The notes under the pieces: model-generated | Databases searched by the model: none | Told to the model about the DNA's origin: nothing | The model's input: the letters and a program-made list of their open reading frames with translations, nothing else | In this document: one piece after another, positions 10,541 through 60,943 of the stretch | Layout of the letters: each line of letters begins with the position of its first letter | Position numbering within the stretch: the first letter of the stretch is position 1 | Source: Monocercomonoides exilis PA203 | Taxonomy: Eukaryota; Protista; Preaxostyla | DNA: 64,000 nucleotides | Assembly: GCA_001643675.2 (NCBI GenBank) | Contig: LSRY02000014.1 | Span: forward strand, 682,001-746,000 | Direction of reading: 5' to 3' | Made by a program: the position numbers and the translations under genes

Positions 10541-13500
10541 TCATCCCTTTTCAAATATACCTTTTTTTTCATTCACTTCCATTTCCCCTTCCTTTTCACG
10601 CTCCTTGCTCTCGCAACTTTTTTCGTTTTCTTCACTGCTTTCCTCAAAAATGATTGCATCGGTCATCGTCACAAGAAAAGTCACACTTGGAAAAATCCCA
10701 ACCAGCTCTTTCTTCACTTCTGTGAGTGTCGGTCTTTTCGATGCCTCTGATGACAGGCATTCATCCACCACTCTCTTCACAATACTCTCTTCAATTCCCA
10801 TCTCATCTGGCTTCTCTCCGTCAACAATCTTCTGCCCAGCCACTTCCCCTTCATACTCTCCAAATGGGATCTGGAGCGTCATGCACTCCCACAGCATCAT
10901 CCCAATCGAGAATGCCACTGACTTCTCTGTCGCTCCCATCTTCCTGTTCACCTGCAGCTCAGGTGCCTTCCACCGCAAACACTCCTTCCACTTATCCTCC
11001 GATTCTTCAAATGCTGATGATGGAAGAGAATCTCCCTCTTCATCATCATCATCATCACTTGCAGATATCACAATTGTGGTTGATAAGATTGAAGATGAAT
11101 CATCATCATCATCAGAAGAAAACGAAGAACAATCCGAGTGAAGGGCAATGCAGATCACCATGTGCTCAGACAAAAGCACAATGTGCGAACTCAGGTTTCG
11201 CAAAGAGGGAAGTTCATCTTCCTCATCTTCAAGCGAGTGCAAAGCCCCATTCGCCACCCAGAATAGCATCTGTGCTCCGGTCATCTCCCTCTCCTTCAAG
11301 GTACCAATTGCCATCTCCTTCTTTTCATTCCTTCCATGAAGCAGAATGAACAGTGAATCTCTCAGATCCACAATCAGTTTTTCAAAAGGCGATGAGCAAG
11401 CCATTGCATCCACCAGATTCGACATGGATGAGGTAGTTGGGCACAGATCTTCCCCATGAATAAATGTGGTTTCTGTGTCTGTGAATGAAACTGATGGAGA
11501 TGATGTTCTCTTCCTCGTTTCTTCTTCTTTTTCCTTCTCTAATTCACATTCTTTAATCTTATCTGATTCTTGTTCAAGAATACATTCCGTTGATCCATTC
11601 TCAGCCAGAAGATATTCCGAAGACTCAGAATGTCCCATTTTCTTTTCATATTCTCTATTCTTTGTCCTCTCTTCATTCTTCTTCTCTGCCTCCCTCTCTG
11701 CCCTTCTCCACTGATCTTCTGGTGACATCTCCATTGTCACCATCTCAAATACCTTTGGATCCTTTCTGACATTATCATTTACAATCTCTTTGTATTTCCT
11801 AATTTCTTCTTTTCCTATCCTCCATCGAATGGCGAGAACAACGAATCCAATTAGAATAACAAAAAGAACAATTGACATAGCTATTATTATCCACAATGAA
11901 CTTGTCAAGTTGTCTCCTTTCATAATATTTCCATTTCCATTTGGTTCAGGCTCACTTTTATTCTTCAAAACAAATGACTTCGTTGATGAAGGAGACTCTG
12001 CATCCCCAAATAAAATATGCACATACACTTCTATTTCATCTCCACAGCTGGTGATGAGATCTTTTGCCACACTTCCTTCAACTTCTCTTTCTGACAAGAA
12101 TCCATTTGAATCAAAATCATGTTTTTCAATCTCTTTCTCTTCTCCAAGACTCTTCACAACTGAGAATGACAGATTGCATGGAACAAGAAGCATCCCTTTG
12201 AATGTCAGCTCCATTCTGTCTGTCTCTTCTTTTGCTTCCACACTCTCCAACACAGGAATGAAGAATGATGAATCCCTTTCTGAAGCAATTCCTTCAAAAT
12301 TGCACCCATCATTCAACATCCAAAGTGATGTGCCATCCTTCAATCCGTCTCCTCCTTTCAAACTCATCACATTCAATGTTACTGAATCTGAACAGATGAT
12401 ATTTCTCCTCAATGATGGATATCCTTCAATTGATGGATTGTTATTCAAAAACTCTCCTTTCTCAATCGACACAGATCCTCCGCTCATTATTATTCCTCCT
12501 ACTGGTGAATTTGTGATTGTTGTATCTTTCATCATCGCTGAACTCTTCACAACATCCACAAGGGATCCTTCCCATCTGCACATCTCTTCTTCCTCATTAT
12601 TCAAATATTGCTCATTTCTTTTATTTGAACTCCCATCAAACATGCAGCTGTCCATTGAAACATCTGTGCAATCCTCCAATTTCATCAATTTCCCTTTTAC
12701 AGTCGTTGAGCTGACATCACCTATTGTACAATTTGTCAATTGAATTGTCTTTTTCATTGTCAAGCAAGATATCAATGATTCTTCATTTCCTTCAACTGAA
12801 ATGTTTTCTGAATGAAACTTTTCCATACTTAATTGCCCACATTCATTAATATCTATCAGAGATGTATCAGTTGTTGAATTGCACAATGATAATGAATCAA
12901 TCACCGATGGAAGTAGCGATGAAAGACACAATGCAGATTCATGAAGAATGAGATTTGATATTGTGAATTCCATGATTTGTAATTCACCCTTCTCCATATT
13001 AATAATGTGAAATGGAATGCTCGCAAAAGCTGCATTTACACCTTCCACTGGTAGTTTTGAACTGAATGAGCAATTCATTATCTCAAGAATCCCTCCTTCT
13101 GGTGACATCAATGATTCATGTGAAGAGATGAAATTTGAATCAAACACAAAATTCACTCTCACCAACGAGACTGTTCCTGTTGTTGTCACTAATGTCTCTC
13201 TTGTTTTTCCAATGTTTGATTTCACTTCAACTTCACACAAGCCTCTGCTCTTCGAACTCAAACTCATTTCCTCCAGATTTATTTCTCTTCCAACCACACC
13301 CTCAGTGTCAACATACAATAGACTCACATATTCAGATGTCAGGTGCACCAATCCATGCTCAATTGAGTCACATGGAAGTGTGTTTGTTCCACACTGTCTG
13401 TCATTCGATCCGTCCACACTGCTCACAACAATTGTGTCACTCTGATGGATAGTCACAAATCCAATCAGATCTGTATCGCTTTGGTAATCACTCTCATCTC

Positions 13501-16500: not shown

Positions 16501-19500
16501 CGCTCAAACAAGGCGCTTTCTCCAACCCGCAGTACAATTCATCCACTCCAGATGTTCCATCAACAAACACCGAGTCAGCAAAGTATCCATCGAAGAATAT
16601 GAACAAGTCAACGTTCCAATCTCCAAAAGCCTCTGTTTTGTCATGTCCAACAGCCGAGTTGTCTTTCTGAGTGATGTTTCCCATGAAAGTGAACAAGGGC
16701 TCTTTCACAGAAGCGACAAGGGATTCACACACAAAATACATATCTCTTCCGACACTGGCCTTGTTGGCTGAAAACACGATATTGGTGATGGAAAAGGTTG
16801 TGGATGACACTTGTGAATCATCCTTGTACTCGATCATGAGAGCACCGCCTCTTCCTCCAGAACTTGTATCCTCGCTCACACAGCAGGTGGAGAAGGTGGA
16901 ATCACTCACCGAAAAGGAGTTGGCAGGGGCAGATGAGGCGAATGAGATGCACCCGCCATTGGTGGCAGTCTGTTGGCTCAACTGTTCTGAGTTGATGCTG
17001 GTGATGGTGCAGTTGGCGAGGGAGAGGGAAAGGGCAGGGGAGGTGGCAGAGGAGAGAACACAACTGGCGGGGGAGGCAGTGGATGTGATATCGGTAATGT
17101 TGGAGGAGTTGAGGGTGAGGGGAGCTGTGAGGGAGGTGAGGTGGAAGATGCTTTGGCTATTGAGGGGGAGACTGGTGATTGCTGTGTGGTTGAGGGCAAG
17201 GGAGCCAGCAGTGAGGAAGAAGAGAGGTGTTTTTATTGTTATGGAGGTTGTTCCGGTGATTGTGGTTGTGTTGAGGTTGAGGGAAGGGGAGTTATTGGAG
17301 AGGTGGAAGAGGATGGGAGTGATGGGGTTTGTGGAGTTGTGAGCGATGGCGAGGGTAGAGACTGTGAGGGAGCCCTGAGTTTGTTGGAAGAGGGCAGAAG
17401 AGGCAGATGGATCTGGTGAAGAGGAAGAAGATGATGATGTTTGAGGAATACCATATGAAGAGATAATTGTGGCATCTGTTCCATTTCCGGTGATTATTGT
17501 ATTTGGGGCACTGAATGTGAGTGTCTGAATAGGGACAAATGTTGAAGCGAGGAGGGTGAGGGAGACGTGTTGGAGGAGGGAAATGAAGCTGCTGAGCGCA
17601 TACTCGATGGTGGCACATGGGGTCTGTTCAGGTCTACCACAGGTATCAGCATCTGATCCGCTGTTGGCAACTATTTTGATTGTCGAAATGAGAAGAATCC
17701 AGTGGTTAACAGTCTCATTACCTGCTGTTCCTGCATTCCATATTCTGTTTGTTGGAGTTGTTGAGATGCAATTCTCGAATGGAGATTGAGTGATACTGCT
17801 TCCACTGAAGAACACATCGTTTCCTCTGCCATTAGTGGCGGAGTTTCCATCGAAGAAACAGAATGTGATAATTTTTTCCCCACTCATCCAGGAATAAGTT
17901 GAATGATAATAAATAGCAGCACCCCCATAATTGGCAGAGGCAGTCAATTTATTGTTTACAAACTGGCAATCATTAATCAAAAATTGGCTTGGTTTGTTGC
18001 TTGGAGGAATATTGAATGTTAAAGAACCAGCAGAATCACCACCAGAATTTGCAATGCACTTGCATTTGGAAAACAAGAATTGAGCACTTGTTGACATACT
18101 ACCAATCCCAAAATACCAACAAGTTCCACACCAATTTGTTATTTTACAACTTTCCACTCGGTTTTCTGAGAATGAATAAACAGAATTTGTCCGAGGGCTC
18201 CATATTGATGCTGCTCCTCCATGATCCGCTGAACAACTTGTCAAATTTGATTTTGTGATACTGACTTTCAACAAAGCATTACAAAACAACGATCCACCAT
18301 CTGAATCAGTTGAACAGTTGAAAAACGAGCATGAATTGATTGTGAGATTTGCACTTAAATAGTTGACTTTAAGAGCACCTCCTTGATCACTTTCACTGCT
18401 TGAATCATTCCATTCGCACCATTCAAATATATGGCTGTTCAGATCAAAGGAAGTCAATCTTCCAGGTTTCTTTCTTTGAGATTCAGTTCCAACATGTACA
18501 ATAGCATCATTTGGTAAAAAGCGTGTTTGGTGAAGGAAAGAGGCATTGAATGCAGAAAGAGAAGTGGATGGGCTGTTGATGGAGGGAAGAATAGCACCAT
18601 CGATGGGGTTGTGGGTGCGGATGAAGATGGTCGAGTGGATGGAGACGGTTGAGTGAAGAGAGAAGGAGGGGATTGCATTGTTATTGATGTTGGTGGAGGT
18701 GAAAATGGAAGAAGAGGAAGAGGTGGTTGAGATGAATGAATTGAGTGAGTGTGAAGGAAGGGATGGAAGAGATCGAGGGGATTGGGGAGAGGAGATGTTG
18801 GAGAAGAGGGTGTTTGAGAGATGGAGATTGAGATGGATTTGGAGGTGGGGATGGGATTGGTGATAGATATGGAGAGGGGAAGGGGAAGAGGAAATGGAAG
18901 GGGAAGGGGAAGAGGAAATGGAAAGAGAAGAGGAAGGGGAAGGGGAAGAAAAAGAAGAGGATGAGGATGAGGATGAGAAAGATGAAGGAGATGGGGAAAG
19001 GGAAGGAGATGGAGAAGGGGATGGGGAAGAGAGGGAAGAAGGAGAAAAAAGGAAGGGATTGTGAAGGGAGATGAAAGAGGAGAAAGAGGAGTGGGAGATG
19101 GAGAAGGAGGCGGGGATTGGGGAGTGGGTATCCGGGAGGAGATTGTTTGGGGTGGAGAAGAGGGGGAAGGAGAAGATGGCCAGTTGGTGGATGATGAGGG
19201 AGAAGTTTGTGAGGGTGAGGGAGGCGTGGGCAGAGATGAAAAGTGGAGATTTTGTTGCCTGGTTGACTTGGAAAGTGGAGGAGATAATGGTGGAAGCTGA
19301 GTGGCATTGGGAAGTGAGAAGTGGACAACCAGCGAGAGGGATAATGTTGAGATGTGTCACACACAAGGAGCTGTTGATGATATTTAGACTTGTTTGAATG
19401 CTGCAAATGTAATTGTCAGCAAGTTTTATAACTTTTTCTAATGAATTGTAAAAATTAACGTTACCATCTCCACATATATTTCCAATGCTGATCATGCCGT

Positions 19501-19612: not shown

Positions 19613-21026
19613 GCTGGAGAAGTGCCAAACCATGGATGTGGATGTGAGGGAAATGGGGTAATATAAAATTCCTGCGCCCCATTTTATTTTCCTCAATTAT
19701 TATTCTTATCAAATTATCGATTTCACAATAAGTTCTCATGATCGGATAATTATTGAAGAAGAAAATTCAAAAGTTAATTGTGGAGGAAGCTTGATGTTTT
19801 TTTTTCTTTCTTTTCTTTCTTTTTTCTACACTGCTTCCTTCATAACGAAATAAAAAACTTTTTGAAACAAAAGTGAAAATATAAAATAATTCTTTTGAAT
19901 TTTTGTTTTCAAATTTTCGCGATGAAAAAATACGTTTATTCTGCAACAAAAAGATAAAGTAAAAGAGAAATTTTCAAAAATTCTATTTTTTCAACTTTTG
20001 AGGGGATTGTGAAAGTGATTTATCATTCTCACTTTTTTTTAGTGTAACCTAACAACACTTTTTTTATCAAAAGTTTTATGAACCGGAAAGTTTTTAAGTA
20101 CCGATTAATTATTTTGAATGTCGATGAAAAACTCACGTTTTTAATTTGTTGGTAAAAGTGGAATTGTATGCTCCAAAGTCCGTCATCCACTTTTTGGCTC
20201 ATGACAGATAAAAACGAAAAAAGTGCAAATTTACAGCAAACGACCACCTAAGGTCCACAGTAAAAAATTGGTTTGAGTGGCTAATTTTAATGAAATAATG
20301 AATTCTGAAGAACAAAAAGAGGGTTTCTATTTTTGGAAATAAACTAATTTTGTCATTGAGTAATTTTCAGAGTTTCTGAAACACTTATTATATTTTCTTT
20401 GATTTTTGATAGTTCACAGCAAGAGAAGCATATTGTTTTAGAAATAAAAACAAAAATTAAAATGAAAAACAACTTTACAAAAAAATAATTTTCTCTCAAA
20501 AAATGATTTTATTTGGAAGAACTCCGTGAAATGAAAAGCATTCCTGAAACAAAAAATGAAAAAATAACCAAAGTAGTTGACAGTTCTCTGTCTTTTTTTA
20601 AAAAAATTAAATGCCAAAATCACGATTGAGATAAATGTTACTTTCCAATAATGAAACCAAAAAACTGAAATACTCTTTCATGAAAAAACCCTCTAACAAC
20701 TGCATTGAGCATCAAGTAACAAAGATGAATGTGTGCGTTCAATCTCAAACTAGAAGATTTAAAAACTCTGAAGAATTTTCATATTGAGATAAATATTATC
20801 TCAATAAAATTAAAATTGAAAAAAGAAAAGGACAAACAAAAATAAAGGAAAAGAAATAGAAACGGAGAGTTTTCAAGGCTCATCGAAAGGAAAATATAAA
20901 AGTTTTGATGAAGATAATAATAATTATTAATTTTACATCATCCATCAAAAAGTGAGTTACATTTCTTTAAAAAAAATGAAATTAACAAACATATTCAAAA
21001 TTATATTTGATTTACAGCTTTCCTCA

Positions 21027-25801: not shown

Positions 25802-25803
<2 letters not shown>

Positions 25804-25836: not shown

Positions 25837-25837
<1 letters not shown>

Positions 25838-27499: not shown

Positions 27500-27531
<32 letters not shown>

Positions 27532-47931: not shown

Positions 47932-47932
<1 letters not shown>

Positions 47933-47979
<47 letters not shown>
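47933..47979 (+). repeat. Poly-T homopolymer (47 nt)
   Basis: Direct observation. Confidence 0.9.
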
Positions 47980-48071
47980 CGGAAACAACGTTAATTTCCA
48001 ATTTTTCTTTTTTTCTTTTGCTGGAAGTTATGTTTGAGTTTTATTTCTCAATATTTATTTTTTATATATTT

Positions 48072-48276: not shown

Positions 48277-48673
48277 ATTTTAGGTTTGAATAAGAAAAGG
48301 ATGGAGACATTACTATTTTTCTTTCGCATGAAGCATTAGCAAGTCTGTTTTAATGTCCCGCTCTTTGAGAGAGAAGTGATGTGAACTCTAAAAGAAGATC
48401 TGAAAAAAAAATTAGTGATAACAAATTGAATTTGCTCAGATTGATTACTAAAAATATCATTCAAATAAACTTTTATCTGTAAATATTTCCCATTTCATTC
48501 TTTCCAATTTACGTGTTTTCGTCGTGTTTTTGATATTATAGGTATCTGGATGGATTGAAAACTTTCAAAGAGTAAATATTCTATTTGAAAGCATTGATTG
48601 CAAGTGATTATGCAACAATAATTCTACAGGTATTTATTTTTTGTGCTCATCCAATCTACCTGGAATTTTCCCT

Positions 48674-51600
48674 TCAATATCTACTACCTAATAATGATAT
48701 TGATTTTATGGTATTGCTGTCCTCGTCTTCGCTTTCGTTCTCGAAATCAATGGCATCTGATACTGTGAGCATAGCAGCTCCTGCCGGGAAATGTTGAATA
48801 AACTCTCTTTTCATTACAATGAGAGTTGGGCGGTTGCCCGGATGAGGAGAAAGTGCATGGTGAACTATTTCTGTGAATGATGCTCCCTTTTCTATTTCTA
48901 CGTTTGGCCTCTCTCCATTCACAATCTTCTGCCCTGCCACCTCTGCCTCATACTCTCCAAACGGGATTTGAAGGGTCAAACACTCCCACAGCATCATCCC
49001 AATCGAGAACGACACTGACTCCTTTGTTGCTCCCATCTTCTTGTTCATCTGCAGCTCTGGTGCCTTCCACCTCAGGCACTCTTTTTTGAAGGCATCCTCA
49101 TCCTCTTCAAATGCTGATGAGGGAAGGGAGTCATCATCATTACCATCATCGTCACTGGTAGATGTCACAACTGTTGATGATGAGATGGAGGATGAATCTG
49201 AATCATCATCTGACAATAAGTCAGAGTGCATCACAACGCAGATCACCATGTGTTTTGAGAACAGAACAATGTGCGGACTCAGATTATTCAATGATTGAAG
49301 AGGGTTTTCCATCTCATCAAATGAATGGAGTGCCAGATTGGCCACCCAGAACAGGATCTGTGCAGCTGTTTGCTCTCTTTCCTGAATACTCCCAATCGCC
49401 ATCTCCTTCTTCTCATTCCTTCCATGAAGCAGCATGAACAATGAATCCCTCAGATCCACAATCAATTTTTCATGTGGAGACGAGCATGCCATTGCATCCA
49501 CCAGATTCGACATGGATGAGGTTGTTGGGCACAGATCCTCCCCTCGAACAAATGTGGATTCCGTGTCTGAAGTATCTGTGGTTGAAGTGGATGAAATGGA
49601 TGGCGACGGTGTTCGCTTCCTTGTCTCTTCCTCAACTTCTTTCTCATCAACTTTCTCCAGCATCCATTCTGGAATCTTGTCTGAGTCCCTTCCCAAAATG
49701 TATTCAGTGGAGCCACTCTCACTCAGCAAATGCTCTGATGACTCTGAGTGTCCCAAGCTTTTCTCATACACCCTCTTCTTCATTCTCTCTTCATTCTTCT
49801 TTTCAGCCTCCCTCTCTGCTCTCCTCCACTGCTCCTCTGGTGACATCTCCATCGTCACCATCTCAAATGCTTTCGGATCCTTTTTCACTGTGTCTTCCAC
49901 AATCACTTCAAGTTCCTCTGTCCTTCTCTTTTGCTTTCTCCATCGAATGGCCAGAACAACTGATACAATGAGAACAATTAAAAGGATTATTGCCATGACA
50001 ACAACAATTATTGGCCAAAATGATTTTCCTTCTTTCTCTCCTTCAACAATTCTGTCATCTCCTTTTCCTTCGGTTTCGCTTCTGTTCTTCAGGATAAACA
50101 AATCAGTCGATGAAGGCGAATCAATCTTTCCAAACAGAAGACTCACACTCACTTCTGTCTCTGCTCCCACTGCTCCCATCTGAACCGATGAAACAACTGC
50201 AACAATTTCGTTCTCTGACACACTTTCCTTTTCTCCAATCCCATAGCTCTCAACCACCTCTTCCCTTCCATTCCTGAAGCTCAACTTCAACCAAACATCA
50301 CATGGTAGAAGAAGTCTCCCACTCAGCGTGATGATTGTTCTTCCCTCAGATCCTGTCTCATTCCTCGCCTCTTCCACAACTGGGATGAATAGTGGTGATC
50401 CTCTCTCCTCCATCATCCCGCTCAACTCGCATCCTTCATCCAATATCCAAAGTGAAGAATTATCCTTCAATCCATCTCCTCCTTTCAAATTCATCACATT
50501 CAACACTCCTGAATCTGAGCAAATGATATTTCTTCTCAGTGATGGATATCCTTCAATTGATGGGTTGTTGTTCGTGAAATTCCCTGCTTCTATTGTCACG
50601 CTTCCTCCACAAATAGAAAGACCACCAATGGAAGAGTTAACGACACTCGTATCCTTCATCATTACATTTGAATCACTCAGACGAATCAGCGACTCATTCC
50701 ATTTGCATATTCCCTCCAGGTCAGTGTTTTCATCCTTCTCTTTTCCATCTTTGTTTCTCAATCCATCAAACAAACACAAATCCATTGAAGCGCTTGCGCA
50801 TTTATTGATATCCATTGCGCAAGAACCATACCCTTTCGCGACAGCGATGCTCACTGAGCAATTTGACAGCTCCAATTGATGAATTAACTCACTGAATTCC
50901 AATGGCACTTGATCACTTTGTTGAGTGACATTTTCAACCCTCACACTCTGAAGCAACGATATCCTTTTTTCATCCTTCGATTCCATCAACACTTTTGAAG
51001 TTAGTGATATGATAGGCTCTTCAAATGATACATCTTCAAACACACTCGAAATAATGCTGATTGAATCAGATTCCCCGTTGATAGCGCTCACTGTGAGATG
51101 CAATTCAGACACAGAGCATCGTTCCAGCAAGCAACCTCCGTTAAACACTCGAATAATGTGATATCCAACAGAAGCTCTTTCTGAAATCATTGAACTGCTT
51201 CGAAATGAGCAACTGCCCAATGTTGAAAGACCACTCTTCACACATAGGAATGACGAGTGCGAATCGCTTGAAGTCGAACAATACTCAAAGCACACTCGAC
51301 TTATGGCAACATTGTTGATTGCCTGAATAATGAAGTCACTTGTTCCATTGATGGATGCACCAACATTAACAACACATGGATTTCTCAGTCGCGATGAGAG
51401 TTCCATCTCATTCAGCTCCGCTTCACCTTCGAGATTTGCCTGCTCCACAACATACATTTCACTCACATATTCCCCTGTCAAATGATCCAACGCATAATCA
51501 ATCGTGGCACACGGAAGCAAGGGCGCACCGCACTGACGATCATTCTTCCCTCCGCTTGATTGCTCTGAGCAAACATATATAGTGTCCGAAAGATATACAG

Positions 51601-54600
51601 TGATGAAATCCAGAAGATTCGTGTCTGTCTTGTGCTCTGTGCTGTCTATCCCACAAATCCCTTTTTCTTGATCCGAGATCTTCCTGAGGTCAAATCGGAA
51701 TTGCGTTTCATTGATCTGCGACGATATGCTGAAACACTGAACAAAAATATCACACCCAACCCCTGCTGTATTCGCCACAAATACCATCGTCCTGAACTCA
51801 AAATCCAACATTCCTGTCTCATTGCTCCCCACATACACCCCTCCTCCCTTTCCGATGTCTGAACAGCTGCACCGAACAATACTGCTGTTCACCATGTTCA
51901 TCCTTCCACCTCCATTAATCCACAGCTCCATAACCCCTCCTTGCAAGCTTTGCTTTGCTCTGCAGTCACTTGCAACGCTTCCATTCACCTTCATCATCAC
52001 TCCCTTTCCTGTGTCTGTTCGCATGACGCTGCACCGATCGCTCCTTCCTTGAACACCCTCCAGAATGCAATCCTTGAGTTCAACGCTTCCAACAAGATTT
52101 GTTTCGAATCTTCCAAGTGCATTTTCCTCTCCAACAATCTTCACAATCGCATCACAATTCATGTTCACTCCGGAAATAGTTGCTTTCTCAATCACACATG
52201 TGGCCTCATCCCCAACAGCAAACACACTGTCGCCAATGTTGCTCGACTCCATCCTGAACAAATGCACAATCAGCACCCCTTGCTTTGCAAACACAAGCGA
52301 GCAGGAAAACTCACTCCCATCTTTCGCAGCTGAAACAAATGAGCAGTCGCTGAGGTTCAACAGACCTCCTTCGTTCCAAATAAGAGCTTTCACATGTTCT
52401 TCAAACGCTTCTGCCTGCTCAAAGCATATATCTTCCACAAGCACTCCACCATGACTCCTGATAAACCACAATTCTCCCACACTTGCTTTCTTTTCAAATA
52501 CCACTCTGCTCTTCTTTGACTCGTCTCTCTTCCCATCCGATTTCATTTCAAACTCTTCCAAATCATGCTCATCCTGAATAACTGTTTCTTCAGAAACGAA
52601 CATTAAACGAGATTCCCCTTCGCTTTTCAGTTGTTCCATCCCTTTCCAAAACGAATTGCATGGATCTTCTTGTCTTCCACACCTTGCCACATCAAAACCT
52701 TCTTTTCCAACATACACTTCCCATCCCTCATAGGAAACCAAAAATCTAAGCAAATCCGTTTCAACAAACTTGCCATCACTCCCCACAAACATGTTCCCAT
52801 CTGTGTCTCCTTCTCCACTCCCATAATTGAATATGAATGCATCCTGATTCACAGACTCGTTGAGATCACAATCAACAATAAACACATTCCTTCCCAGCCA
52901 TGCTTCATTCTGATCAAACACCAGTCCTTCAAACACAAATCGCGGACTTTCCTCTGTGTTTGTGGTGTTCAAGAAAGCAAATCCCCCTTTTCCGTCTTCA
53001 ATACTGCATCCGCACTTCATCAGCCGCGTTCTGTTCACAACAACATTCCCTTCCCTTCCAACTTCAATCTCAGCCACTCCTCCTTTCTTTCCACCATCTG
53101 TCCTGATTCCTGTGAAGTTGCATCCTTCAATCACTGCTCTTGCAAGAAGAAGAAACGGAACAACTGAAAAACTCGAAGACTCCATCTGGCAATTTATCAA
53201 TTCCACTCCATCGCCACTTGCCTCAATCACCCCAAACTTCACTTCCGCTTCACACACAATTTGACAGCTTTCAAGAGTTAGCGTTCCTGCTTTTGAGATG
53301 ATTGCCGCTTTCAATTCGTTTTCCAGTTTGCTTGGCAATTCCAACGAGACCCTGCCAATTGTCAGACTTGCACGTGCTGTCAATACTGCTTCAAACACTC
53401 CATCTCTCTTTGGATTTCCTTGAATTACCAAAATCACTTTTTCTCGTTCTCCTCCAGTCACTCCAACAACACTTGTTTCCTCCAGAAATTCATAACAGTC
53501 TTTGACGCTCCCAACATTCACAATCTGCAAGTATCTCTCGGCTGAATCGTCAAAGTGCCCCACTCCACTCCAGATCGATTTGCAAGGAAAAGCCTCGCTT
53601 CCGCATCCCTTCACATCAATTCCTTTTCCTCCATCCACAACCACCACACCCGCTCGACGCTCCACAAGGAACAACATCAAATCAACACTCTCATCGAAGT
53701 TCACTTCATCCACCCCAGCCATATCTGCAATTCTCACTCCATTTTCATCAAATAAATCAATAGCAATCGATGCCTGTGTGGCAGTGTTGTTCAAGTCAAC
53801 ACATTCCAAAAACAGATCTTTCCCTTCTTTTCCTTTGTTCTCCTTAAACCACACTTCCCTCAGATTCATCCCTTTTCCATCGGCTCCCTCAACTTGAATA
53901 AATATTCCTCCACCTCTCCCTTTCCCCTCATCCACAGAACACATCTCCACTCGCACCCACTTCATTATTAACTCTCCTCCCAATCCCACAACACAGCTCC
54001 CTCCTCCTCCCCTTCCTTCCACTGACTTGCAACCAGAAATTGTGCTCCCATTCATCATCTTCATTCTCCCCCCTGTTTCAATCTTCCATCCACCTCCATC
54101 ATATGTGCACCAGCAGTTATCCACAGTGCATCCATCTGCTGTGCAACTGCTTCCATCACACACAACAACAAACCCACTTCCTTCTCTCCCTGAACATCCT
54201 GTAATTAGTGTTTTTGCCAGTATGACAGTCCCACTTCTCGCCTGAATGATCCCTCTTTCTCCAAAAAATATCACACTCCTCACTTCGCAATCATCAAATC
54301 TGACTGTGCCCCCTTTTCCAACAACAATCCACTTCTCACAAGCTCCATTTCCCTCTTCTCCACCACTCCAAAAGATATCACCAACAAATGAACACTGTCC
54401 AGCACACGCTTCAACAACACAATCGAAAGCACTTCCACCTCCATTCACTCCTGAAAGGTCAAACTTCACATCAGAAAACACAAGTTGTGTCAGCGCCTCA
54501 CCACTGCTCAGCACAAACTGCGCGTCTCCCCCAATCACAAGCGATGGTTTGCTTTCGTCTCCTTGGATGGTCAACGAATCTCCATTTCGATCAATCTGCC

Positions 54601-57600
54601 CACTCACTGGCGTTGTTGCTTGCAGCTGGATGATGGAATGCGTGGTGTTCATCAGCTGAAATCCCAAATCAACAGATTCACATGGAAGCTCTCGATACCC
54701 GCACAGTGTCGAATTGCTCCCATTTCCATTCACAAACACAAATCGCGACGAGCTCGGAAACAGATACTCCATCATCGTCACCCCCTCTGTGGTCTCTGAC
54801 AATCGATCAAGCACCCACAGCCGATCTTCTGCTGTATCGTTCTGTGCTGATCCATTCCAGAGCACCCCAACAATCATCAGTCGAGGTTGGATGCACTCCA
54901 CAAACACATCTTTCCCCTTCAATGCTCCATTCTCATCAAACACAATCTTCTTCATCGAGTATTCTGATCTAGTTCCCCACAAGTTCATATACAGCCCTCC
55001 TCCAAACCCACTTCCCGATGGAACTGTACTGCGGTTCACAGTGTTTTCATCAAATCCAAAATACCCTCCATCATCCACTTCCACAATCACACTTCCACCT
55101 CGTGACCCTCCAGCATCACATCCATTGTGCTCCAATGTGCAGTTCACAATCTCCACCCTCTCTGCTTCTCCAACTTTTCCATCAATCGCTCCTCCATTTC
55201 CTGCTCCTCGCTTCAACCCTGAAAATGTGCTGTTCCTCATTCCAACGCTGATATCTCCTTCCACTCTGATCACATTTCCATCTGTCTCATTTCTTTCTCG
55301 AAATTCACTGTTTGCAATCTCAACATTTCCTCCTGCCTTTGCCCTCACAACACTCCCTTCTTCACTGACTCCCACATTTCTCATATAAATACCATCCAGT
55401 ACTCCTTCAGCCTCATTTCCATCAAACAATATAACTCCTGCCTTCACAAACACACATTCTTCAATTCTGCAACGTGTCATTTCCATTCTGCCTCCTGAAA
55501 CAGCCACAATCCCCATCCCAACAACACCATTTTCATTCACAAAGTCGCACTCTTCAATCTTCAGATTCATTGAACTGCAACACATCATCCATTTTTCTCT
55601 TCCATCTCCTTCTGATCGCGGCAGCTGAAATACCATTCCATGCAACCTGATATCTTGTTGTGTTTCAATCATTCCTTTCCCGATCCCATTTCCATCCTCT
55701 TTCACTTTGATCAATGTGCCGTTCGCTTCTCCGCAAATATCCATCGGTTGTGCATCCAAAATAATATCTTTCTCAAACACAAATGAGCTCTGCAGCTTCA
55801 ATGTTGCATTCTTCTTCCCAAAAAGCACACTTCCCGCATGCTCTATCGTTTTGCATGCAAAATCTTTGAATCCACAAACTTCATAATCAATCCCACTTCC
55901 ACCCACACATCCCACAGCTGGCATCCCTCGAAACAGCACTGCCAGCGGGATCACTTGATCCACTGCATTCGACTCACATCCTCCAACATCATCCAGCCTC
56001 GCAATCTCAACTGCCTTCTCAAACTCAAATCCAATTGTCGTTCCATTCACAATCCTCTTCAGCTCCTTGCCTTCCACAAACACCCAATTCCCTCCTCTTG
56101 TTGCGCTGCATCCATCAAACACCGCATTCTGAATGCAGAATGCTTTCACCTCATCATCCACAGACAAATACATCCCTCCTCCACGCCCTCCACTATCCTC
56201 CACACTTCCAGCATGGCAATCTGAACACTCAATAGCCTGCACAGATGAAGTGTTTCCCAACTCTGTCAAACCTCCTGCCTTCACTTTCACAAATATTCCT
56301 CCTCCATTTCCCCCTGTGCTTTCGCAGCTCTCGAAGTTTCCTCCAACTATCTTCAATATTTGTTCCTCACCCACAACGCAACATACAGCTGATCCGTTCC
56401 TTCCTCTCACGATTCCTGATTTAAGCACACATTCCTCCAATATAACACCTTTGGCTCCACATGAATTGATAATCCTGCATTCCTTTCCTGACCCTTCATT
56501 ATCAAACACAGAATTCTTAACATTCAGTTGAGCTTCTGCTCCACAGACATACACCAATCCCGTTTCGGACGAGGTAGTGGCATTCAGAGATTTCATATTC
56601 GCAATATCCACTGCTGCTGCTCCCTCTATCCTCGCCAGATTACTCCCTGAAAAACACATATTGTCAACTGCCACAAATGCCAGCTCTGTCTTTCCATTGC
56701 TCGCAACAACAACACAAAATGTGCGTATTGCACCTTCGCTCAGAGATCGAAATGAGCAGTTCTCGATTCTCAATGTCCCCTTGCTTTCTTGGCTGAAAAG
56801 CGCCTCATGCTCCTGAGCAGATCCGGGAACAGAAAATAATAACAGCTTCACACAAGAATTCGGCTGCCCATTTCCTTTCATATGCAGAAGCCCTGTTTCA
56901 CCAGAGGCGCTTCCATGCACAATCACTTCGCTCATTTCACTTTTTCCATGAACAAAGCACCCTTTCTCGTGGCTCAGAGAAACACTCTCATTCAGCTCAA
57001 ACACACCCACAACCTCCACATCTTTTTCTTGCTCCTGCTGCCTCTGGAACGAATATCCCACTGTTTTGCACGGATACTCAATAAATCCGCATCCAACCAC
57101 ATCCAGTCCATTCGCTGAGGATGCGGAAATCGTGCTTCCCACATCGTGCAGCAAATACACAAGTGGTATGGCATTCAGACGATCAGCCCCATCAAAGCCT
57201 CTCATCCCATCCACTTCAGACAACTGCATGGATTTTCCAAATGGAAATCTTTCTTCAATCACACTCTCTGTCAGATTAGGCGATTCCATAAACAGATCAT
57301 TTCCATATTCTGCACTATTCGCTCCGCCTTCGCCAAATGATGGCAAAGAAACCACAAAGTTTGCATCAGCTTCATCCGCCTCAATCAAAAACCCTCCCCC
57401 CAATCCCTTTCCAGGTGTAGCTGTTGCTGTGCACAAGCAAAACGAACACTTGTTCACTTTCACAACATTCGTCTTTGCAATGTGCAAGTGCATCCCTCCT
57501 CCTCCCTTTCCAATTTCATTCACTGAGCAAGCATTGAATGTGCACTCTTCAATGAGTGCAGAATGCAATCCAGTCTCTCCACATGCAGCCACACTCATCC

Positions 57601-60600
57601 CTCCTCCATCTCCAGTTGCACGAGTGATGCTTGTGAAATTGCTTTTTGTCGCATTCATCACATTCACATTGCTCACACTCACAGCACTTCCTCCGCCCAA
57701 TTTCACAGAATCAAACAAGCAATTCTCCATCACTAGCTCTGTTCCAGCTTCGCTCTCAACACCAACAATTGCAGAAATATCCCCAAACACAACATTTCTC
57801 ATCTTGAAATTCACAAATTTCAGCAATCCCCCACTTGCCTTTGCAAAAGTGTTCATCAGCTCATCTCCACTCTCTGCCATCTCTGCTTCACAATACGACA
57901 ATAGCATGCTCCCTGCTTGGCATTCCACAAACACTTTCTCACTTGAACCCTGAAATGGAGCCAGCTGAAATCGAATGTTTGTCATTGATGTTTTCATTCT
58001 GCTCACAATCACTGCTTTCCCACTGAGCATCTCTGGACACTCCACTCGCACAGCTGTTCTTTCGCTCACACATTTCAATTCCCATTCTTCATTTCCCATC
58101 ACCGTCTCTTCCTTCCACACAAACCCTTCTTGCACCACAATCGCTCTCTTTCCATCTCCAAATCGCAAGTGAACCACTTTTCCAATTGTGCGGCAGGGAT
58201 AATTCTTGGTCCCACATCCACTGAAATCCCTCATCCCACTCCCTCCCACATATCCGCTCCCTCCAAACACAGCCAAATATGCCAGCAGTGGCACAGCCTC
58301 TTCTCCGCATCCATCCTCCATTCCCATCATATCTTTGTTTTCCATCTTTGTTGTGCCAAACAACACACTCGTGCTGCTCACAACCCTCGACAATTCCCTC
58401 GCCTCCACAAACACATTCCTTCCCCACCAACCCGAGCATCCACTGAACTGCACATCCTCAAGAATAATATCCTCTCCTCCATCTTCCACACAAATCATCA
58501 TCCCTCCCCCTTTTCCTTTCTTTGTTTCCTCGTCTGCCACACTGCACTGTTTCAAAGCTGTTTTGCTCCAGTTCCCCACCCTCAATGAACCTCCTCTCTT
58601 CACTCGAATACAAAATCCCCCACCATCTCCTTCTTGGCAGCTGCAATTGTTCAGTGACACATTGCTCAGATCAACCATTTCACCACTTCCAACCACCTCA
58701 TTGACAACACTTCCATTTCCATGAAGCCTTTGGAGGTTCTCAACCAGCACATTCTTCAGCTCAATGCCTCCCACCAGCGAATTAAACACAGAGCAATTAC
58801 TCAAAAATAATCCACTTATCTGAAGCTCGTCCACATTCAGCGTTCCAGCTCCTGAGCAAATAATCAGCGGGGATGTGAATGGCAGACCAGATCCATGATC
58901 TTCAGATGCAAATAGCTTCATTCTGTTCAGTTTCATCTTTCCCACTGAGCTCACTGCAAAGAGTGTCATCCCTTGCTTTGCTGCTGAATGCTCCACACTG
59001 AAATTCGACCCCAACAGCGATCCACTCGACACTTCAAACAAGAACTGGCCAGGAAGATTTTCAGTCTTGATCACACACTGCTCCTGAGCAACGCCTCTCA
59101 CAACGATATCCCTCAAAGGTCTTGATACTCCCCTTTTTGGTGAAAACACACTCTCCAGCAGCTTCAATCGCTGTTCTCCAGAATCTGAAAAGCTCTCCAC
59201 TACATATTCTATCGACTGGCATGCAGAACCCTCATCGATTCCACAAAAATCTTTGTCAACCCCATCTTTTTTCACAAAACGTTCCAGTATCCCATTCGGA
59301 AGCCAACTGTTCTTTTCTCCAAGTGCTGAGTGATACACTCTGTTGCCTTCTGCTCTTGTTGAAAACGAAGAAACACACAAAATGAAATTCTCCCCAATTA
59401 CAGATGTATTGTCATATATATATATGTCATTCCCTTTTTGATCGTAAGCAGAGTTGTTGTGAAAGAAAGAGAAAACAATCATTTGGTAATTTATTGTTCC
59501 TGAAAATAGAAAATAATAATAGACACCGCCTCCAAAGGAAGCTGTCGAGTTCTTAAAAGTGCATTCATGTGTTTTCATTGTATATGACATGCTACAAAAC
59601 AAAAGTGCTCCACCTCCAATGCTGGATTTCACATCGCATGTATCAAAATAACATCTGCTAACAATTGGTCCGTCTTCTTCACAGCCTGTTGAGCGGCATG
59701 CTTGAATTCTTATTCCACCACCATATGCTCTAGCGGAAGTGTTTCGACAAACGCAATCTTCAATAGAAGTGCACTGCACGATGCAAAACAAAAGCGAAAC
59801 ACCTGCGTCGCCTCTTGAATCACATCTTTCAAAAACGTTTCTTTTCCATTGAACACTCTTCCCATAATATACCATGATTGCTCCTCCGTATCTCTGACAA
59901 GTGCATGTGTCAAACAAGCAATCTTCAACAATCACTACGCAATTATCTTCACCATAAATTCCGATTGCCCCTCCTGAGTATTTTGTACTGCTATCAGAAA
60001 CTGATTCATTTGTAAAGGCTGATGAAGTGTTGTGCCATTCACATGCAATGAATTGCAGAGTGTCATTTCTCTCTCCAAGATCTTGCTTCTTCATTATTAT
60101 GTTTCCTTCAATCTTTAAGTCATTTCCTGTTTTCCTGCAACGAGCGAATGAAGTGTTAAAGGCATCCATCGCTGATTGCCCATTAATTGAACTCACTATT
60201 TCTCCATCCAGAACATTATCCACCTCTGTGAAACTGCAAGAGTCAATAATCGCCAAGCAACAACACTTATCACAAGCTGTTCGAAAATCTCTTGGTCCTG
60301 TTGCAGTCACGTTGGCAAAATCTGAATGAACGATTGAAATAATCGAAGAAGGCACAGATGACACAAATGGAATCTCAGTCAGCGCAAATGACATAAATGA
60401 CGATTCAACAATGTTCACATCATTTTCTTGAGTTTCAATAGGCAACCGATTTCCAGGGCCAACAAGAGAAGAAATACTTGTCGTTGGTTCCAATGAAAGA
60501 AGTGTCAAATTTTTGATGAGAAATGTGCTGGCAGAGCTCCTGAACATATTTGATTCAGAACAGCACGAAATGGCTATCACACATTGATCAACAAAAACAA

Positions 60601-60943
60601 GCGACTGCCTTCCAGCATCAATAATTGAACGAACGCTGCTCTGATCAAAGTGAATCTTCTGCGTTGTCAGCGAAGTGTTTGTCAAGCCCAATTGCGAAGA
60701 TATCTGACTATTAGTCAACTTTTGATAAAGATTTCCTTTTGTTTTTCCAATCTCTTTTGCGAATGAAGATCCTTCAATCCCCCACTTATGTTTTATGTCA
60801 TAAGATAAAAAAGGCTTCTCATCACTCCTCTTTTCAAAGAAATCAATGTTTTCAGTCTTTATTGAACTTTGACCTTGACAGTCGGATTTTGGACTTTCTG
60901 TTGAGCAGCTCATGAGAATTAAATAGAAAAGAACAATAATCAT
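48674..60943 (-). CDS. Giant type I membrane protein: 8 Cys-capped beta-helix-like modules, TM helix, C-lobe-only pseudokinase
   Basis: Uninterrupted 4109-codon ORF (track start is TTG; likely ATG at 60943, MIIVLFYLILMSCS is signal-like). Eight CGxxxx(P/A)C motifs, TM FWPIIVVVMAIILLIVLIVSVVLAI, then CLRWKAPE, FSIGMMLWE and RPT. Confidence 0.92.
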   Translation of the reverse strand: MIIVLFYLILMSCSTESPKSDCQGQSSIKTENIDFFEKRSDEKPFLSYDIKHKWGIEGSSFAKEIGKTKGNLYQKLTNSQISSQLGLTNTSLTTQKIHFDQSSVRSIIDAGRQSLVFVDQCVIAISCCSESNMFRSSASTFLIKNLTLLSLEPTTSISSLVGPGNRLPIETQENDVNIVESSFMSFALTEIPFVSSVPSSIISIVHSDFANVTATGPRDFRTACDKCCCLAIIDSCSFTEVDNVLDGEIVSSINGQSAMDAFNTSFARCRKTGNDLKIEGNIIMKKQDLGERNDTLQFIACEWHNTSSAFTNESVSDSSTKYSGGAIGIYGEDNCVVIVEDCLFDTCTCQRYGGAIMVYYGKSVQWKRNVFERCDSRGDAGVSLLFCIVQCTSIEDCVCRNTSARAYGGGIRIQACRSTGCEEDGPIVSRCYFDTCDVKSSIGGGALLFCSMSYTMKTHECTFKNSTASFGGGVYYYFLFSGTINYQMIVFSFFHNNSAYDQKGNDIYIYDNTSVIGENFILCVSSFSTRAEGNRVYHSALGEKNSWLPNGILERFVKKDGVDKDFCGIDEGSACQSIEYVVESFSDSGEQRLKLLESVFSPKRGVSRPLRDIVVRGVAQEQCVIKTENLPGQFLFEVSSGSLLGSNFSVEHSAAKQGMTLFAVSSVGKMKLNRMKLFASEDHGSGLPFTSPLIICSGAGTLNVDELQISGLFLSNCSVFNSLVGGIELKNVLVENLQRLHGNGSVVNEVVGSGEMVDLSNVSLNNCSCQEGDGGGFCIRVKRGGSLRVGNWSKTALKQCSVADEETKKGKGGGMMICVEDGGEDIILEDVQFSGCSGWWGRNVFVEARELSRVVSSTSVLFGTTKMENKDMMGMEDGCGEEAVPLLAYLAVFGGSGYVGGSGMRDFSGCGTKNYPCRTIGKVVHLRFGDGKRAIVVQEGFVWKEETVMGNEEWELKCVSERTAVRVECPEMLSGKAVIVSRMKTSMTNIRFQLAPFQGSSEKVFVECQAGSMLLSYCEAEMAESGDELMNTFAKASGGLLKFVNFKMRNVVFGDISAIVGVESEAGTELVMENCLFDSVKLGGGSAVSVSNVNVMNATKSNFTSITRATGDGGGMSVAACGETGLHSALIEECTFNACSVNEIGKGGGGMHLHIAKTNVVKVNKCSFCLCTATATPGKGLGGGFLIEADEADANFVVSLPSFGEGGANSAEYGNDLFMESPNLTESVIEERFPFGKSMQLSEVDGMRGFDGADRLNAIPLVYLLHDVGSTISASSANGLDVVGCGFIEYPCKTVGYSFQRQQEQEKDVEVVGVFELNESVSLSHEKGCFVHGKSEMSEVIVHGSASGETGLLHMKGNGQPNSCVKLLLFSVPGSAQEHEALFSQESKGTLRIENCSFRSLSEGAIRTFCVVVASNGKTELAFVAVDNMCFSGSNLARIEGAAAVDIANMKSLNATTSSETGLVYVCGAEAQLNVKNSVFDNEGSGKECRIINSCGAKGVILEECVLKSGIVRGRNGSAVCCVVGEEQILKIVGGNFESCESTGGNGGGIFVKVKAGGLTELGNTSSVQAIECSDCHAGSVEDSGGRGGGMYLSVDDEVKAFCIQNAVFDGCSATRGGNWVFVEGKELKRIVNGTTIGFEFEKAVEIARLDDVGGCESNAVDQVIPLAVLFRGMPAVGCVGGSGIDYEVCGFKDFACKTIEHAGSVLFGKKNATLKLQSSFVFEKDIILDAQPMDICGEANGTLIKVKEDGNGIGKGMIETQQDIRLHGMVFQLPRSEGDGREKWMMCCSSMNLKIEECDFVNENGVVGMGIVAVSGGRMEMTRCRIEECVFVKAGVILFDGNEAEGVLDGIYMRNVGVSEEGSVVRAKAGGNVEIANSEFRERNETDGNVIRVEGDISVGMRNSTFSGLKRGAGNGGAIDGKVGEAERVEIVNCTLEHNGCDAGGSRGGSVIVEVDDGGYFGFDENTVNRSTVPSGSGFGGGLYMNLWGTRSEYSMKKIVFDENGALKGKDVFVECIQPRLMIVGVLWNGSAQNDTAEDRLWVLDRLSETTEGVTMMEYLFPSSSRFVFVNGNGSNSTLCGYRELPCESVDLGFQLMNTTHSIIQLQATTPVSGQIDRNGDSLTIQGDESKPSLVIGGDAQFVLSSGEALTQLVFSDVKFDLSGVNGGGSAFDCVVEACAGQCSFVGDIFWSGGEEGNGACEKWIVVGKGGTVRFDDCEVRSVIFFGERGIIQARSGTVILAKTLITGCSGREGSGFVVVCDGSSCTADGCTVDNCWCTYDGGGWKIETGGRMKMMNGSTISGCKSVEGRGGGGSCVVGLGGELIMKWVRVEMCSVDEGKGRGGGIFIQVEGADGKGMNLREVWFKENKGKEGKDLFLECVDLNNTATQASIAIDLFDENGVRIADMAGVDEVNFDESVDLMLFLVERRAGVVVVDGGKGIDVKGCGSEAFPCKSIWSGVGHFDDSAERYLQIVNVGSVKDCYEFLEETSVVGVTGGEREKVILVIQGNPKRDGVFEAVLTARASLTIGRVSLELPSKLENELKAAIISKAGTLTLESCQIVCEAEVKFGVIEASGDGVELINCQMESSSFSVVPFLLLARAVIEGCNFTGIRTDGGKKGGVAEIEVGREGNVVVNRTRLMKCGCSIEDGKGGFAFLNTTNTEESPRFVFEGLVFDQNEAWLGRNVFIVDCDLNESVNQDAFIFNYGSGEGDTDGNMFVGSDGKFVETDLLRFLVSYEGWEVYVGKEGFDVARCGRQEDPCNSFWKGMEQLKSEGESRLMFVSEETVIQDEHDLEEFEMKSDGKRDESKKSRVVFEKKASVGELWFIRSHGGVLVEDICFEQAEAFEEHVKALIWNEGGLLNLSDCSFVSAAKDGSEFSCSLVFAKQGVLIVHLFRMESSNIGDSVFAVGDEATCVIEKATISGVNMNCDAIVKIVGEENALGRFETNLVGSVELKDCILEGVQGRSDRCSVMRTDTGKGVMMKVNGSVASDCRAKQSLQGGVMELWINGGGRMNMVNSSIVRCSCSDIGKGGGVYVGSNETGMLDFEFRTMVFVANTAGVGCDIFVQCFSISSQINETQFRFDLRKISDQEKGICGIDSTEHKTDTNLLDFITVYLSDTIYVCSEQSSGGKNDRQCGAPLLPCATIDYALDHLTGEYVSEMYVVEQANLEGEAELNEMELSSRLRNPCVVNVGASINGTSDFIIQAINNVAISRVCFEYCSTSSDSHSSFLCVKSGLSTLGSCSFRSSSMISERASVGYHIIRVFNGGCLLERCSVSELHLTVSAINGESDSISIISSVFEDVSFEEPIISLTSKVLMESKDEKRISLLQSVRVENVTQQSDQVPLEFSELIHQLELSNCSVSIAVAKGYGSCAMDINKCASASMDLCLFDGLRNKDGKEKDENTDLEGICKWNESLIRLSDSNVMMKDTSVVNSSIGGLSICGGSVTIEAGNFTNNNPSIEGYPSLRRNIICSDSGVLNVMNLKGGDGLKDNSSLWILDEGCELSGMMEERGSPLFIPVVEEARNETGSEGRTIITLSGRLLLPCDVWLKLSFRNGREEVVESYGIGEKESVSENEIVAVVSSVQMGAVGAETEVSVSLLFGKIDSPSSTDLFILKNRSETEGKGDDRIVEGEKEGKSFWPIIVVVMAIILLIVLIVSVVLAIRWRKQKRRTEELEVIVEDTVKKDPKAFEMVTMEMSPEEQWRRAEREAEKKNEERMKKRVYEKSLGHSESSEHLLSESGSTEYILGRDSDKIPEWMLEKVDEKEVEEETRKRTPSPSISSTSTTDTSDTESTFVRGEDLCPTTSSMSNLVDAMACSSPHEKLIVDLRDSLFMLLHGRNEKKEMAIGSIQEREQTAAQILFWVANLALHSFDEMENPLQSLNNLSPHIVLFSKHMVICVVMHSDLLSDDDSDSSSISSSTVVTSTSDDDGNDDDSLPSSAFEEDEDAFKKECLRWKAPELQMNKKMGATKESVSFSIGMMLWECLTLQIPFGEYEAEVAGQKIVNGERPNVEIEKGASFTEIVHHALSPHPGNRPTLIVMKREFIQHFPAGAAMLTVSDAIDFENESEDEDSNTIKSISLLGSRY

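Follow-up and report, generated by a model that had tools for sequence, protein, structure and literature searches.

Some of the transmembrane kinases (TMKs) of Entamoeba histolytica are possibly pseudokinases, and PATMK acts in phagocytosis (PMC2211552, PMC2880585). Trichomonads possess proteins resembling the polymorphic membrane proteins (Pmps), and 90% of the Pmps of T. vaginalis contain a single transmembrane (TM) span, with endocytic motifs in the short tail (PMC6701047). The chlamydial Pmp is a beta-helical surface adhesin in which a GGA(I,L,V)-type turn occurs once per coil (PMC10715098, PMC11166332). In Monocercomonoides exilis, which eats bacteria by phagocytosis (PMC12308965), the largest gene family is that of the protein tyrosine kinases, with 332 predicted members, 320 of them TKL (PMC6759080), and these genes overlap "unclassified repeats" (PMC8767320). 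The present analysis concerns a stretch of 64,000 nucleotides from M. exilis PA203 (contig LSRY02000014.1, positions 682,001 to 746,000; hereafter the window), which contains three long minus-strand genes, A, B and C, encoding related putative receptors, together with their paralogues throughout the genome. This organism is the model eukaryote without mitochondria, and genome-wide searches took in its 82.3-Mb, 101-contig assembly.

It seems somewhat probable that M. exilis possesses two related receptor classes, comprising giants that bind glycans or prey and carry a docking tail, and a second class that is sorted by adaptors. Both share an outer plan consisting of a signal peptide, a chain of predicted complete right-handed parallel beta-helices capped by a CG..PC motif and bearing GG[A/G]-type turns, an immunoglobulin (Ig)-like stalk and one membrane span. 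Class 1, represented by A and C, combines five to eight or more helices in a freely diverging ectodomain with a tail of ~420 aa under strong purifying selection, and class 2, represented by gene B and found at about 50 loci, has two or three helices and a tail of ~16 aa with a basic cluster and a YxxPhi motif. The beta-helix chains may bind glycans on bacterial prey or gut mucus, the class 1 tails may serve as non-enzymatic docking platforms that relay binding, for example to active kinases or the phagocytic machinery, and class 2 proteins may be receptors that clathrin-adaptor mu subunits sort into the endocytic or phagosomal pathway, rather than decoys.

Giant putative receptors with a kinase-derived tail

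Long open reading frames (ORFs) were found on the minus strand at 10541-19696 (A), 21027-25133 (B) and 48674-61003 (C), in a window whose GC content is ~29% in intergenic and 37-45% in coding sequence. All the features that the original prediction had attributed to three co-oriented paralogues, namely a signal peptide, repeated modules, a membrane-proximal motif and one TM helix, were recovered in A, B and C. The ORF of A (3051 aa) likely starts at Met29 and that of C (4109 aa) at Met21 (nt 60943), each start being followed by a hydrophobic leader. The C.W...NN.P....PSLR.NI motif is common to the three proteins, with PSLR at A 2427, B 1142 and C 3487, and each has one strongly hydrophobic span near its C-terminus followed by basic residues, which fits a type-I topology. 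Beyond this span lie 424 residues in A, 420 in C and 14 in B. A motif scan for the CG..PC cap, which marks the start of each module, gave counts of five in A, three in B and eight in C (the last at aa 587, 930, 1305, 1710, 2101, 2467, 2775 and 3158), in agreement with the predicted module numbers of the two giants. Their features are as follows.

10541..19612, minus strand: gene A, an uninterrupted ORF for a giant type-I membrane protein of the half-kinase class (signal peptide, head, 5 capped modules predicted as beta-helices, membrane-proximal domain, TM span, 424-aa tail)
10544..11815, minus strand: gene A cytoplasmic tail, with juxtamembrane helix, Ser/Thr-rich linker and putative kinase C-lobe remnant with an acidic Ser/Asp insert
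11816..11908, minus strand: gene A TM span, aa 2597-2627, hydropathy 3.33 over a 19-residue window
11909..12625, minus strand: gene A membrane-proximal domain, aa 2358-2596, identity 49% with the domain of C, 26% with that of B
12626..17686, minus strand: gene A modules m1-m5, aa 671-2357, caps at aa 686, 1056, 1407, 1717 and 2102
18647..19399, minus strand: gene A Ser/Pro/Thr-rich low-complexity insert, aa ~100-350, charge-free, no counterpart in C
48674..60943, minus strand: gene C, a giant member of the half-kinase class (signal peptide, head, 8 capped modules predicted as beta-helices, membrane-proximal domain, TM span, 420-aa tail)
48677..49936, minus strand: gene C cytoplasmic tail, putative half-kinase
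49937..50029, minus strand: gene C TM span, aa 3659-3689, hydropathy 3.72
50030..50752, minus strand: gene C membrane-proximal domain, aa 3418-3658
50753..59290, minus strand: gene C modules m1-m8, aa 572-3417

Judged by sequence, the tail of the giants appears to be the C-terminal lobe of a TKL-type kinase that lacks the N-lobe and the catalytic motifs and is presumably dead. The match of the Pfam family PK_Tyr_Ser-Thr to A, whose E of 4.3e-8 passes the curated threshold, is limited to model positions 160-258 of 258, and the kinase match in C is likewise confined to model positions 162-254 of 263. When a profile of 26 tails was searched against the PDB, ~100 residues aligned, from the APE motif to the last helix of the C-lobe, the kinase matches including TAK1, ZAK, BTK and ILK (E 2.6e-6 and weaker). 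APE is invariant in the 26-tail alignment (A292 P293 E294), and no Gly-rich loop (GxGxxG), VAIK, HRD or DFG was present among its conserved columns; the tail thus displays the C-lobe of a eukaryotic protein kinase domain (PF00069/PF07714), with neither the N-lobe of a bilobal fold nor HRD/DFG, as would be expected of the non-catalytic tail originally predicted. A conserved stretch, SL.NLSPHIVLF...VICIVMHSD, which is followed by the acidic Ser/Asp-rich insert, may occupy the place where the catalytic and Mg-binding loops are expected, as far as placement by eye can indicate. Upstream of these elements the tail contains a very conserved juxtamembrane segment (MVTMEMSPEEQW..., GHSESSEHLLSESGSTEYILG) and the Ser/Thr-rich linker.

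The family carrying this tail is large, as had been anticipated. A degenerate DNA pattern coding for the tail heptapeptide EMVTMEM gave 762 genome hits compared with 0 for its control, so that the giant family comprises at least 762 genomic copies, and a pattern for PSLRxNI gave 425 hits compared with 16. Searching the genome with the 408-aa tail of C yielded 1366 candidates and 102 scored loci, of which the 101 others show 79-85% identity and most lie in open frames of 2000-4200 aa. This is the tyrosine kinase family of PMC6759080 and PMC8767320. In term searches, neither of these papers mentioned a transmembrane segment, a beta-helix ectodomain or the loss of the catalytic half, and term searches turned up no word about the family in either the Preaxostyla genomics paper or the culture-community paper. 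Annotated database models that bear the tail (P0022-P0141) are mostly fragments of 226-765 aa, often without the ectodomain, and this may explain why its members have been taken for kinases and nothing more.

Several further observations concern the range of the giants. Some members are very large: the locus G000:C29:365342-366085 (minus strand) falls within an open frame of 7940 aa, and between 16 and 21 matched stretches are present in each of three M. exilis proteins (P0150, P0151, P0174), with lengths of 7937 aa (MONOS_336), 7752 aa (MONOS_9641) and 7749 aa. Two giants, P0155 (MONOS_330, 3231 aa) and P0160 (MONOS_10356, 2889 aa), have short tails with neither the half-kinase nor YxxPhi, and more than two tail types may therefore exist. 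Many giants occur in nearby pairs of opposite orientation, several with identical tail scores, for example C22:982172(+)/988025(-), C36:537953(+)/542532(-), C6:726952(+)/731121(-) and C9:1472011(-)/1492355(+), and such pairs look like inverted (palindromic) duplications.

Conservation along the giants is markedly uneven. Averaged over 28 giants, the identity per column climbs from 0.06-0.36 in the last module through 0.4-0.67 in the membrane-proximal domain to 0.8-0.99 in the tail, and the ectodomains can hardly be aligned; identity and substitution rates were both computed on the loci that match the tail of gene C best. By the Nei-Gojobori method, the nonsynonymous (dN) and synonymous (dS) rates are 0.065 and 0.95 in the tail (dN/dS 0.07) and 0.44 and 1.48 in the membrane-proximal domain (dN/dS 0.28); in the last module dN is 1.09 and dS is saturated, which makes dN/dS unreliable there. 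A dN/dS of 0.07 at a dS of 0.95 indicates that the tail is kept by selection on the protein and not by recent copying alone. The expectation that ectodomains vary more than tails thus holds for the giants, but not for the class of gene B, which is evenly conserved. A huge repertoire of hypervariable ectodomains on a constant inner part is also what would be seen if the giants formed a variant surface coat, an antigenic-variation repertoire like that of the Giardia VSPs or Plasmodium PfEMP1 that evades host IgA and uses the tail for trafficking or anchoring only. We regard such a coat as unlikely, since a 420-aa tail at so low a dN/dS far exceeds the needs of an anchor, M. exilis is a bacterivorous commensal, no evidence of one-at-a-time expression was found, and RNA-library contigs at 95-99% identity suggest that several short-tail paralogues are present together.

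The description of the two giants as nearly collinear applies to the order of their parts, but their ectodomain sequences are far apart. Identity between A and C is 24% for head with head, 23% for m1 with m1, 30% for A m3/C m6, 33% for A m4/C m7 and 30% for A m5/C m8, and it rises to 49% in the membrane-proximal domain and 64% in the TM span plus tail. The alignment begins only at A 353, after the low-complexity insert of A, in which the S+T+P fraction reaches 0.62 and D/E/K/R/G fall to about 0; this insert may be a mucin-like, heavily glycosylated stretch. At aa ~700-900 of A (16997-17599) lies a Ser/Thr-rich but homologous version of the predicted beta-helix module, and the insert and this module together explain the inversions of GC skew at 16760-19340. 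A chimeric origin of gene A was rejected, as A 353-1085 is collinear with C 253-957 (E 2e-32) and the skew tracks the Ser/Thr/Pro-rich composition. N-x-S/T sequons number 57 in C against 27 +/- 4.6 in shuffled sequences, with no excess in A or B, and because the enrichment was seen in C alone it was not used as a sign of secretion.

Fold of the ectodomains

The ectodomains of A, B and C match nothing significant in Pfam, and weak Beta_helix matches were obtained in 3 of 21 class 2 members. The fold was approached through gene B, whose 1368-aa product extends from Met1 (N-terminus MILILILVNHLFANC) and begins with a hydrophobic leader. An AlphaFold2 (AF2) model based on an alignment of 21 paralogues covers B residues 476-1326, with a mean predicted local distance difference test (pLDDT) score of 75. 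The features of gene B are listed below.

21027..25133, minus strand: gene B, the 1368-aa member, short-tail (YxxPhi) class (signal peptide, three predicted beta-helix domains, predicted Ig-like domain, TM span, 14-aa tail)
22608..23708, minus strand: gene B module 2, aa 476-842, modelled as a complete right-handed parallel beta-helix, AF2 blocks mostly at pLDDT 73-96
21189..21536, minus strand: gene B putative Ig-like (TIG-like) stalk domain, aa ~1200-1315, model residues 725-840 strand-rich
21072..21155, minus strand: gene B TM span, aa 1327-1354, hydropathy 3.21
21045..21056, minus strand: gene B YRSF, aa 1360-1363, YxxPhi after the basic cluster NKKRRQ

Module 2 of B (model residues 1-361) superposes at VIA Z 20-22, with a root-mean-square deviation of 3.2-4.0 A over 275-298 aligned residues and a sequence identity of 7-12%, on structures such as 8ja4, 9ozd, 5olr, 7o7a and 4mr0. 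The proteins matched are alginate epimerase/lyase, Vibrio RbmB, rhamnogalacturonan lyase, PL6 lyases, the pneumococcal adhesin PfbA and phage tailspikes. In the model, module 2 has a right-handed parallel beta-helix (pectate-lyase-like) fold, which accords with the pectin-lyase or adhesin type first proposed for the modules, and the remaining modules of A, B and C are provisionally assigned the same fold by their likeness to one another. Tandem-helix PL6 lyases superpose over model residues 1-718, suggesting that the short third "module" of B and the first half of the membrane-proximal domain make up one further helix, which is broken by a disordered, poorly conserved loop. Foldseek returned TIG/Rel-homology C-terminal and Ig V matches at a probability of about 1.0 and a TM-score of 0.4-0.5, with no model ranges; these may correspond to the strand-rich stretch of ~115 residues before the membrane. 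Atlas searches point likewise to DUF1565, Chlam_PMP, Beta_helix and TIG, all of which serve as leads only (Chlam_PMP being sub-threshold).

The GGA and FxxN repeats from which the fold had first been proposed fared differently. GG[AGS][ILVMF] exceeds shuffled sequences 5-10-fold, with two or three copies per module ~30 aa apart, but FxxN is not clearly enriched (17 vs 10, 5 vs 4 and 14 vs 9). Chlam_PMP (PF02415) matched neither the three window proteins at E up to 0.1 nor the 21 class 2 members at E up to 1. With alginate, rhamnogalacturonan and Vibrio-polysaccharide lyases, glycosidases and phage depolymerases as the best structural matches, the beta-helices could conceivably be surface-tethered lyases or hydrolases that digest bacterial capsules or dietary glycans. 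Such an enzymatic role seems quite unlikely, however, as the proteins fall in no Pfam enzyme family (apart from the few weak Beta_helix matches), identity to the matched structures is very low, no catalytic constellation was identified, and the fast divergence of the giant modules argues against conserved active sites.

The short-tail class and gene B

Gene B is a member of a separate clade and not a truncated giant. The last 279 residues of B match 50 genome loci at 45-83% identity and a few more at ~35%, giants being matched at 24-33%, and all 50 matches extend to within 8 residues of the C-terminus of B. Open frames of at least 900 aa are present at 41 of these loci, clustered near 1350-1380 or ~1000 aa, and about nine are broken or short; database proteins likewise fall into two sizes, the ~990-aa forms being without module 1. 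In a tree of the membrane-proximal domain from 29 giants and 21 class 2 members, one branch of length ~4.6 with 100/100 support splits the two classes, and two-module class 2 forms are nested among three-module forms. Class 2 was analysed from 3.8-kb loci and from annotated proteins P0001-P0021; its conservation is even along the length (0.45-0.7), with a dN/dS of 0.21-0.25 in all regions.

The original prediction held that gene B lacks the signalling tail. It does end 14 residues after the membrane span, and tblastn found no tail remnant between B and A, but it possesses a conserved tail of its own. Y1360 is invariant in the class 2 alignment, and Y-x-x-[I/F/M] after an (R/K)-rich cluster is present in all 32 distinct class 2 C-termini, in 20 different tetrapeptides, with the Tyr 7 residues past the TM run in 28 of the 32 and a tail of ~16 aa. 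Even the divergent MONOS_15675 carries YVSF, and the exception is the class member MONOS_1224, which has Phe for Tyr. An invariant Tyr and a bulky +3 residue around variable positions are what one would expect to see if a tyrosine-based sorting signal were functional. Five or more loci of the M. exilis genome carry genes with the mu-homology domain (PF00928), and its endolysosomal machinery has been reported as expanded, with putative phagosomes (PMC6759080). A hidden tail exon downstream of B was considered and rejected, as tblastn finds none and no RNA contig links B to a tail exon.

The original prediction also saw in gene B a tail-less decoy or co-receptor. Its position 1.3 kb from A in the same orientation and a membrane-proximal domain 26% identical to that of A might suggest such a role alongside the neighbouring giants. 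This idea now looks improbable and did not survive the wider comparison: B lies in a separate old clade with an invariant sorting motif, and its conserved ectodomain is at odds with a decoy, which ought to change along with its variable partners. Moreover, of the 14 class 2 loci that were checked, just 2 have a tail motif within 10 kb, so that the adjacency of A and B is not a rule.

RNA evidence for gene B comes from four libraries of a single study, in which exact-match contig pieces cover 20788 to 24549, beginning about 240 nt past the stop codon. No exact piece was found in 19697-20787, the 1.1 kb between the ORF of A and the presumed 3' untranslated region of B. A single contig, from one run, contains a joint that leaves out 98 bases of B (21637 to 21736), and other pieces at 95-99% identity to B are probably paralogues.

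Elsewhere in the window, C lies 23.5 kb from the A-B pair, with unrelated genes in between, and the three genes are not one tight cluster. The intervening genes include an intact, ordinary housekeeping gene at 38468-41701 (plus strand) for a 1077-aa DEAH-box RNA helicase with S1, DEAD, Helicase_C, HA2 and OB_NTP_bind domains, the set of Prp22-type helicases. An ORF at 26988-28310 (minus strand) opens with the end of a kinase domain (its last ~50 residues, Pfam positions 216-263) and then becomes Ser-rich; it is probably the last exon of an ordinary intron-bearing kinase and is not a tail of the family, because tblastn with the C tail matches nothing there.

Relatives, significance and comparison with known systems

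For B and for the tails alike, the nearest database proteins are without exception M. exilis entries named 'uncharacterized protein MONOS_...', and M. exilis is the source of every protein listed by word-based searches with B, the tail alignment and the class 2 alignment. JGI metagenome contigs searched with two tail peptides gave no relative, which is a weak negative. An exhaustive class 2 profile search of 1.84 billion representatives, however, returned 350 proteins at E <= 1e-3, and the 30 that were looked up belong to M. exilis, Blattamonas nauphoetae and one ENA metagenome protein. A Blattamonas-type NMKWW motif before the membrane span is present in at least 28 of the best 150. The Blattamonas proteins, which are 1284-2697 aa long, combine the membrane-proximal domain and a TM span with ~280-325 aa of cytoplasmic sequence. 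In two kinase-type tails that were scanned, Pfam matches the C-lobe region of the kinase only (earliest model position 137), and hhalign of the M. exilis tail profile with one Blattamonas tail gave a probability of 97.9% and E 3.6e-13 over 227 columns, an alignment that takes in the degenerate catalytic-loop stretch (VLQNLNPHWVIL). The half-kinase receptor is thus common to two oxymonad genera. In a joint tree, all Blattamonas proteins form one group (98/88), support at the deep nodes is weak (61/23) and there are several long branches; orthology of the Blattamonas short-tail forms with M. exilis class 2 was accordingly not supported.

Two individual relatives were also observed. P0221 (Blattamonas BLNAU_13651, 5090 aa) has 16 matched stretches and a membrane-proximal-like match at 4468-4693; its UniRef name is 'PPM-type phosphatase domain-containing', and a fusion between a beta-helix receptor and a phosphatase is possible. 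The ENA protein (L061, contig ERZ27256838 of 3044 bp, gene 560-2035) is 491 aa long, with a beta-helix match (profile positions 10-338), one TM span and the tail RRRKSSAYKSL, which contains YKSL, and by its sequence it looks like class 2.

The overlap of these genes with 'unclassified repeats' (PMC8767320) and the broken or short class 2 loci would also be seen if the family were merely repeated DNA, that is, an expanding set of decaying genes without cellular function. Intact ORFs of 1368-4109 aa, strong purifying selection with synonymous change near saturation and the conservation of homologues in another genus make this highly improbable. The proposal of two receptor classes that bind glycans or prey must itself be set against several contrary points. 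The beta-helix fold occurs in enzymes and adhesins alike, and binding rather than catalysis is an assumption. Choosing loci by their match to the tail of C overstates tail identity to some extent, the tail of A being just 64% identical to that of C; a tail dS of 0.95 compared with 1.5-2.0 elsewhere makes some gene conversion possible. The AF2 model of the tail (26 paralogues) has a pLDDT of 38 and is unusable, so that "half-kinase" and "C-lobe only" are descriptions drawn from the sequence alone. The RNA data are assembled contigs that indicate presence and not level, possibly with DNA carry-over.

New in the present analysis are the short-tail class with YxxPhi and the homologous half-kinase receptors of Blattamonas nauphoetae. 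At least 762 genes of 6-12 kb appear in the literature merely as "tyrosine kinases", and their identity as beta-helix receptors with a dead half-kinase would alter the reading of both the "kinome" and the "unclassified repeats" of M. exilis. The family may further point to how a bacterivorous gut protist recognises prey or mucus, with class 2, which is small, conserved and equipped with a classic sorting motif, as an experimental handle. The Blattamonas homologues make the half-kinase state ancestral to at least two oxymonad genera, and they add sequence diversity for structure prediction. A more far-reaching idea, which we hold to be doubtful and offer only tentatively, is that of a two-tier, germline-encoded system of glycan recognition, in which hundreds of fast-diverging receptors on one half-kinase platform, serving as a repertoire for recognising prey or non-self, and a small set of conserved YxxPhi receptors, bringing bound material into the endocytic or phagosomal pathway, predate the split of Monocercomonoides and Blattamonas. 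If this were true, the half-kinase docking platform would represent a type of signalling module not described elsewhere.

Among known systems, the Entamoeba TMKs resemble the giants in forming a large protist type-I family whose members join a repetitive ectodomain through one TM span to an inner domain that is kinase-like. They differ in their CXXC-rich ectodomain and full bilobal kinase with catalytic residues (PATMK lacking the Gly-rich loop only), whereas the M. exilis giants combine a predicted beta-helix ectodomain with the absence of an N-lobe in a family about ten times larger, so that the TMKs are to be regarded as an analogue only. For class 2, the closest architectural analogue appears to be the trichomonad Pmp-like proteins, which likewise have a beta-helix-type ectodomain, a TM span and a short endocytic tail. 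Their tails carry NPx[YF] and an acidic cluster, in contrast to the basic cluster and YxxPhi of class 2, and neither tandem complete helices nor an Ig-like stalk is described for these metamonad proteins in the searched passages of PMC6701047. The searches made recovered no sequence homology to these proteins and no Chlam_PMP match. The chlamydial Pmps share with the window proteins a beta-helical fold, which is predicted in the latter, and GGA-type turns, but they are bacterial autotransporters with a C-terminal beta-barrel, whereas the window proteins have a eukaryotic signal peptide and a TM helix and, unlike the Pmps, show no clear FxxN enrichment and no Pfam hit. Finally, the tail of the giants resembles receptor pseudokinases and ILK, whose C-lobe is among the PDB matches, in that a kinase-derived domain would have been kept for protein binding. 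To our knowledge, known pseudokinases retain both lobes; in the giants, by contrast, only the C-lobe is recognisable, and it is joined to a conserved, helical and Ser/Thr-rich juxtamembrane region.

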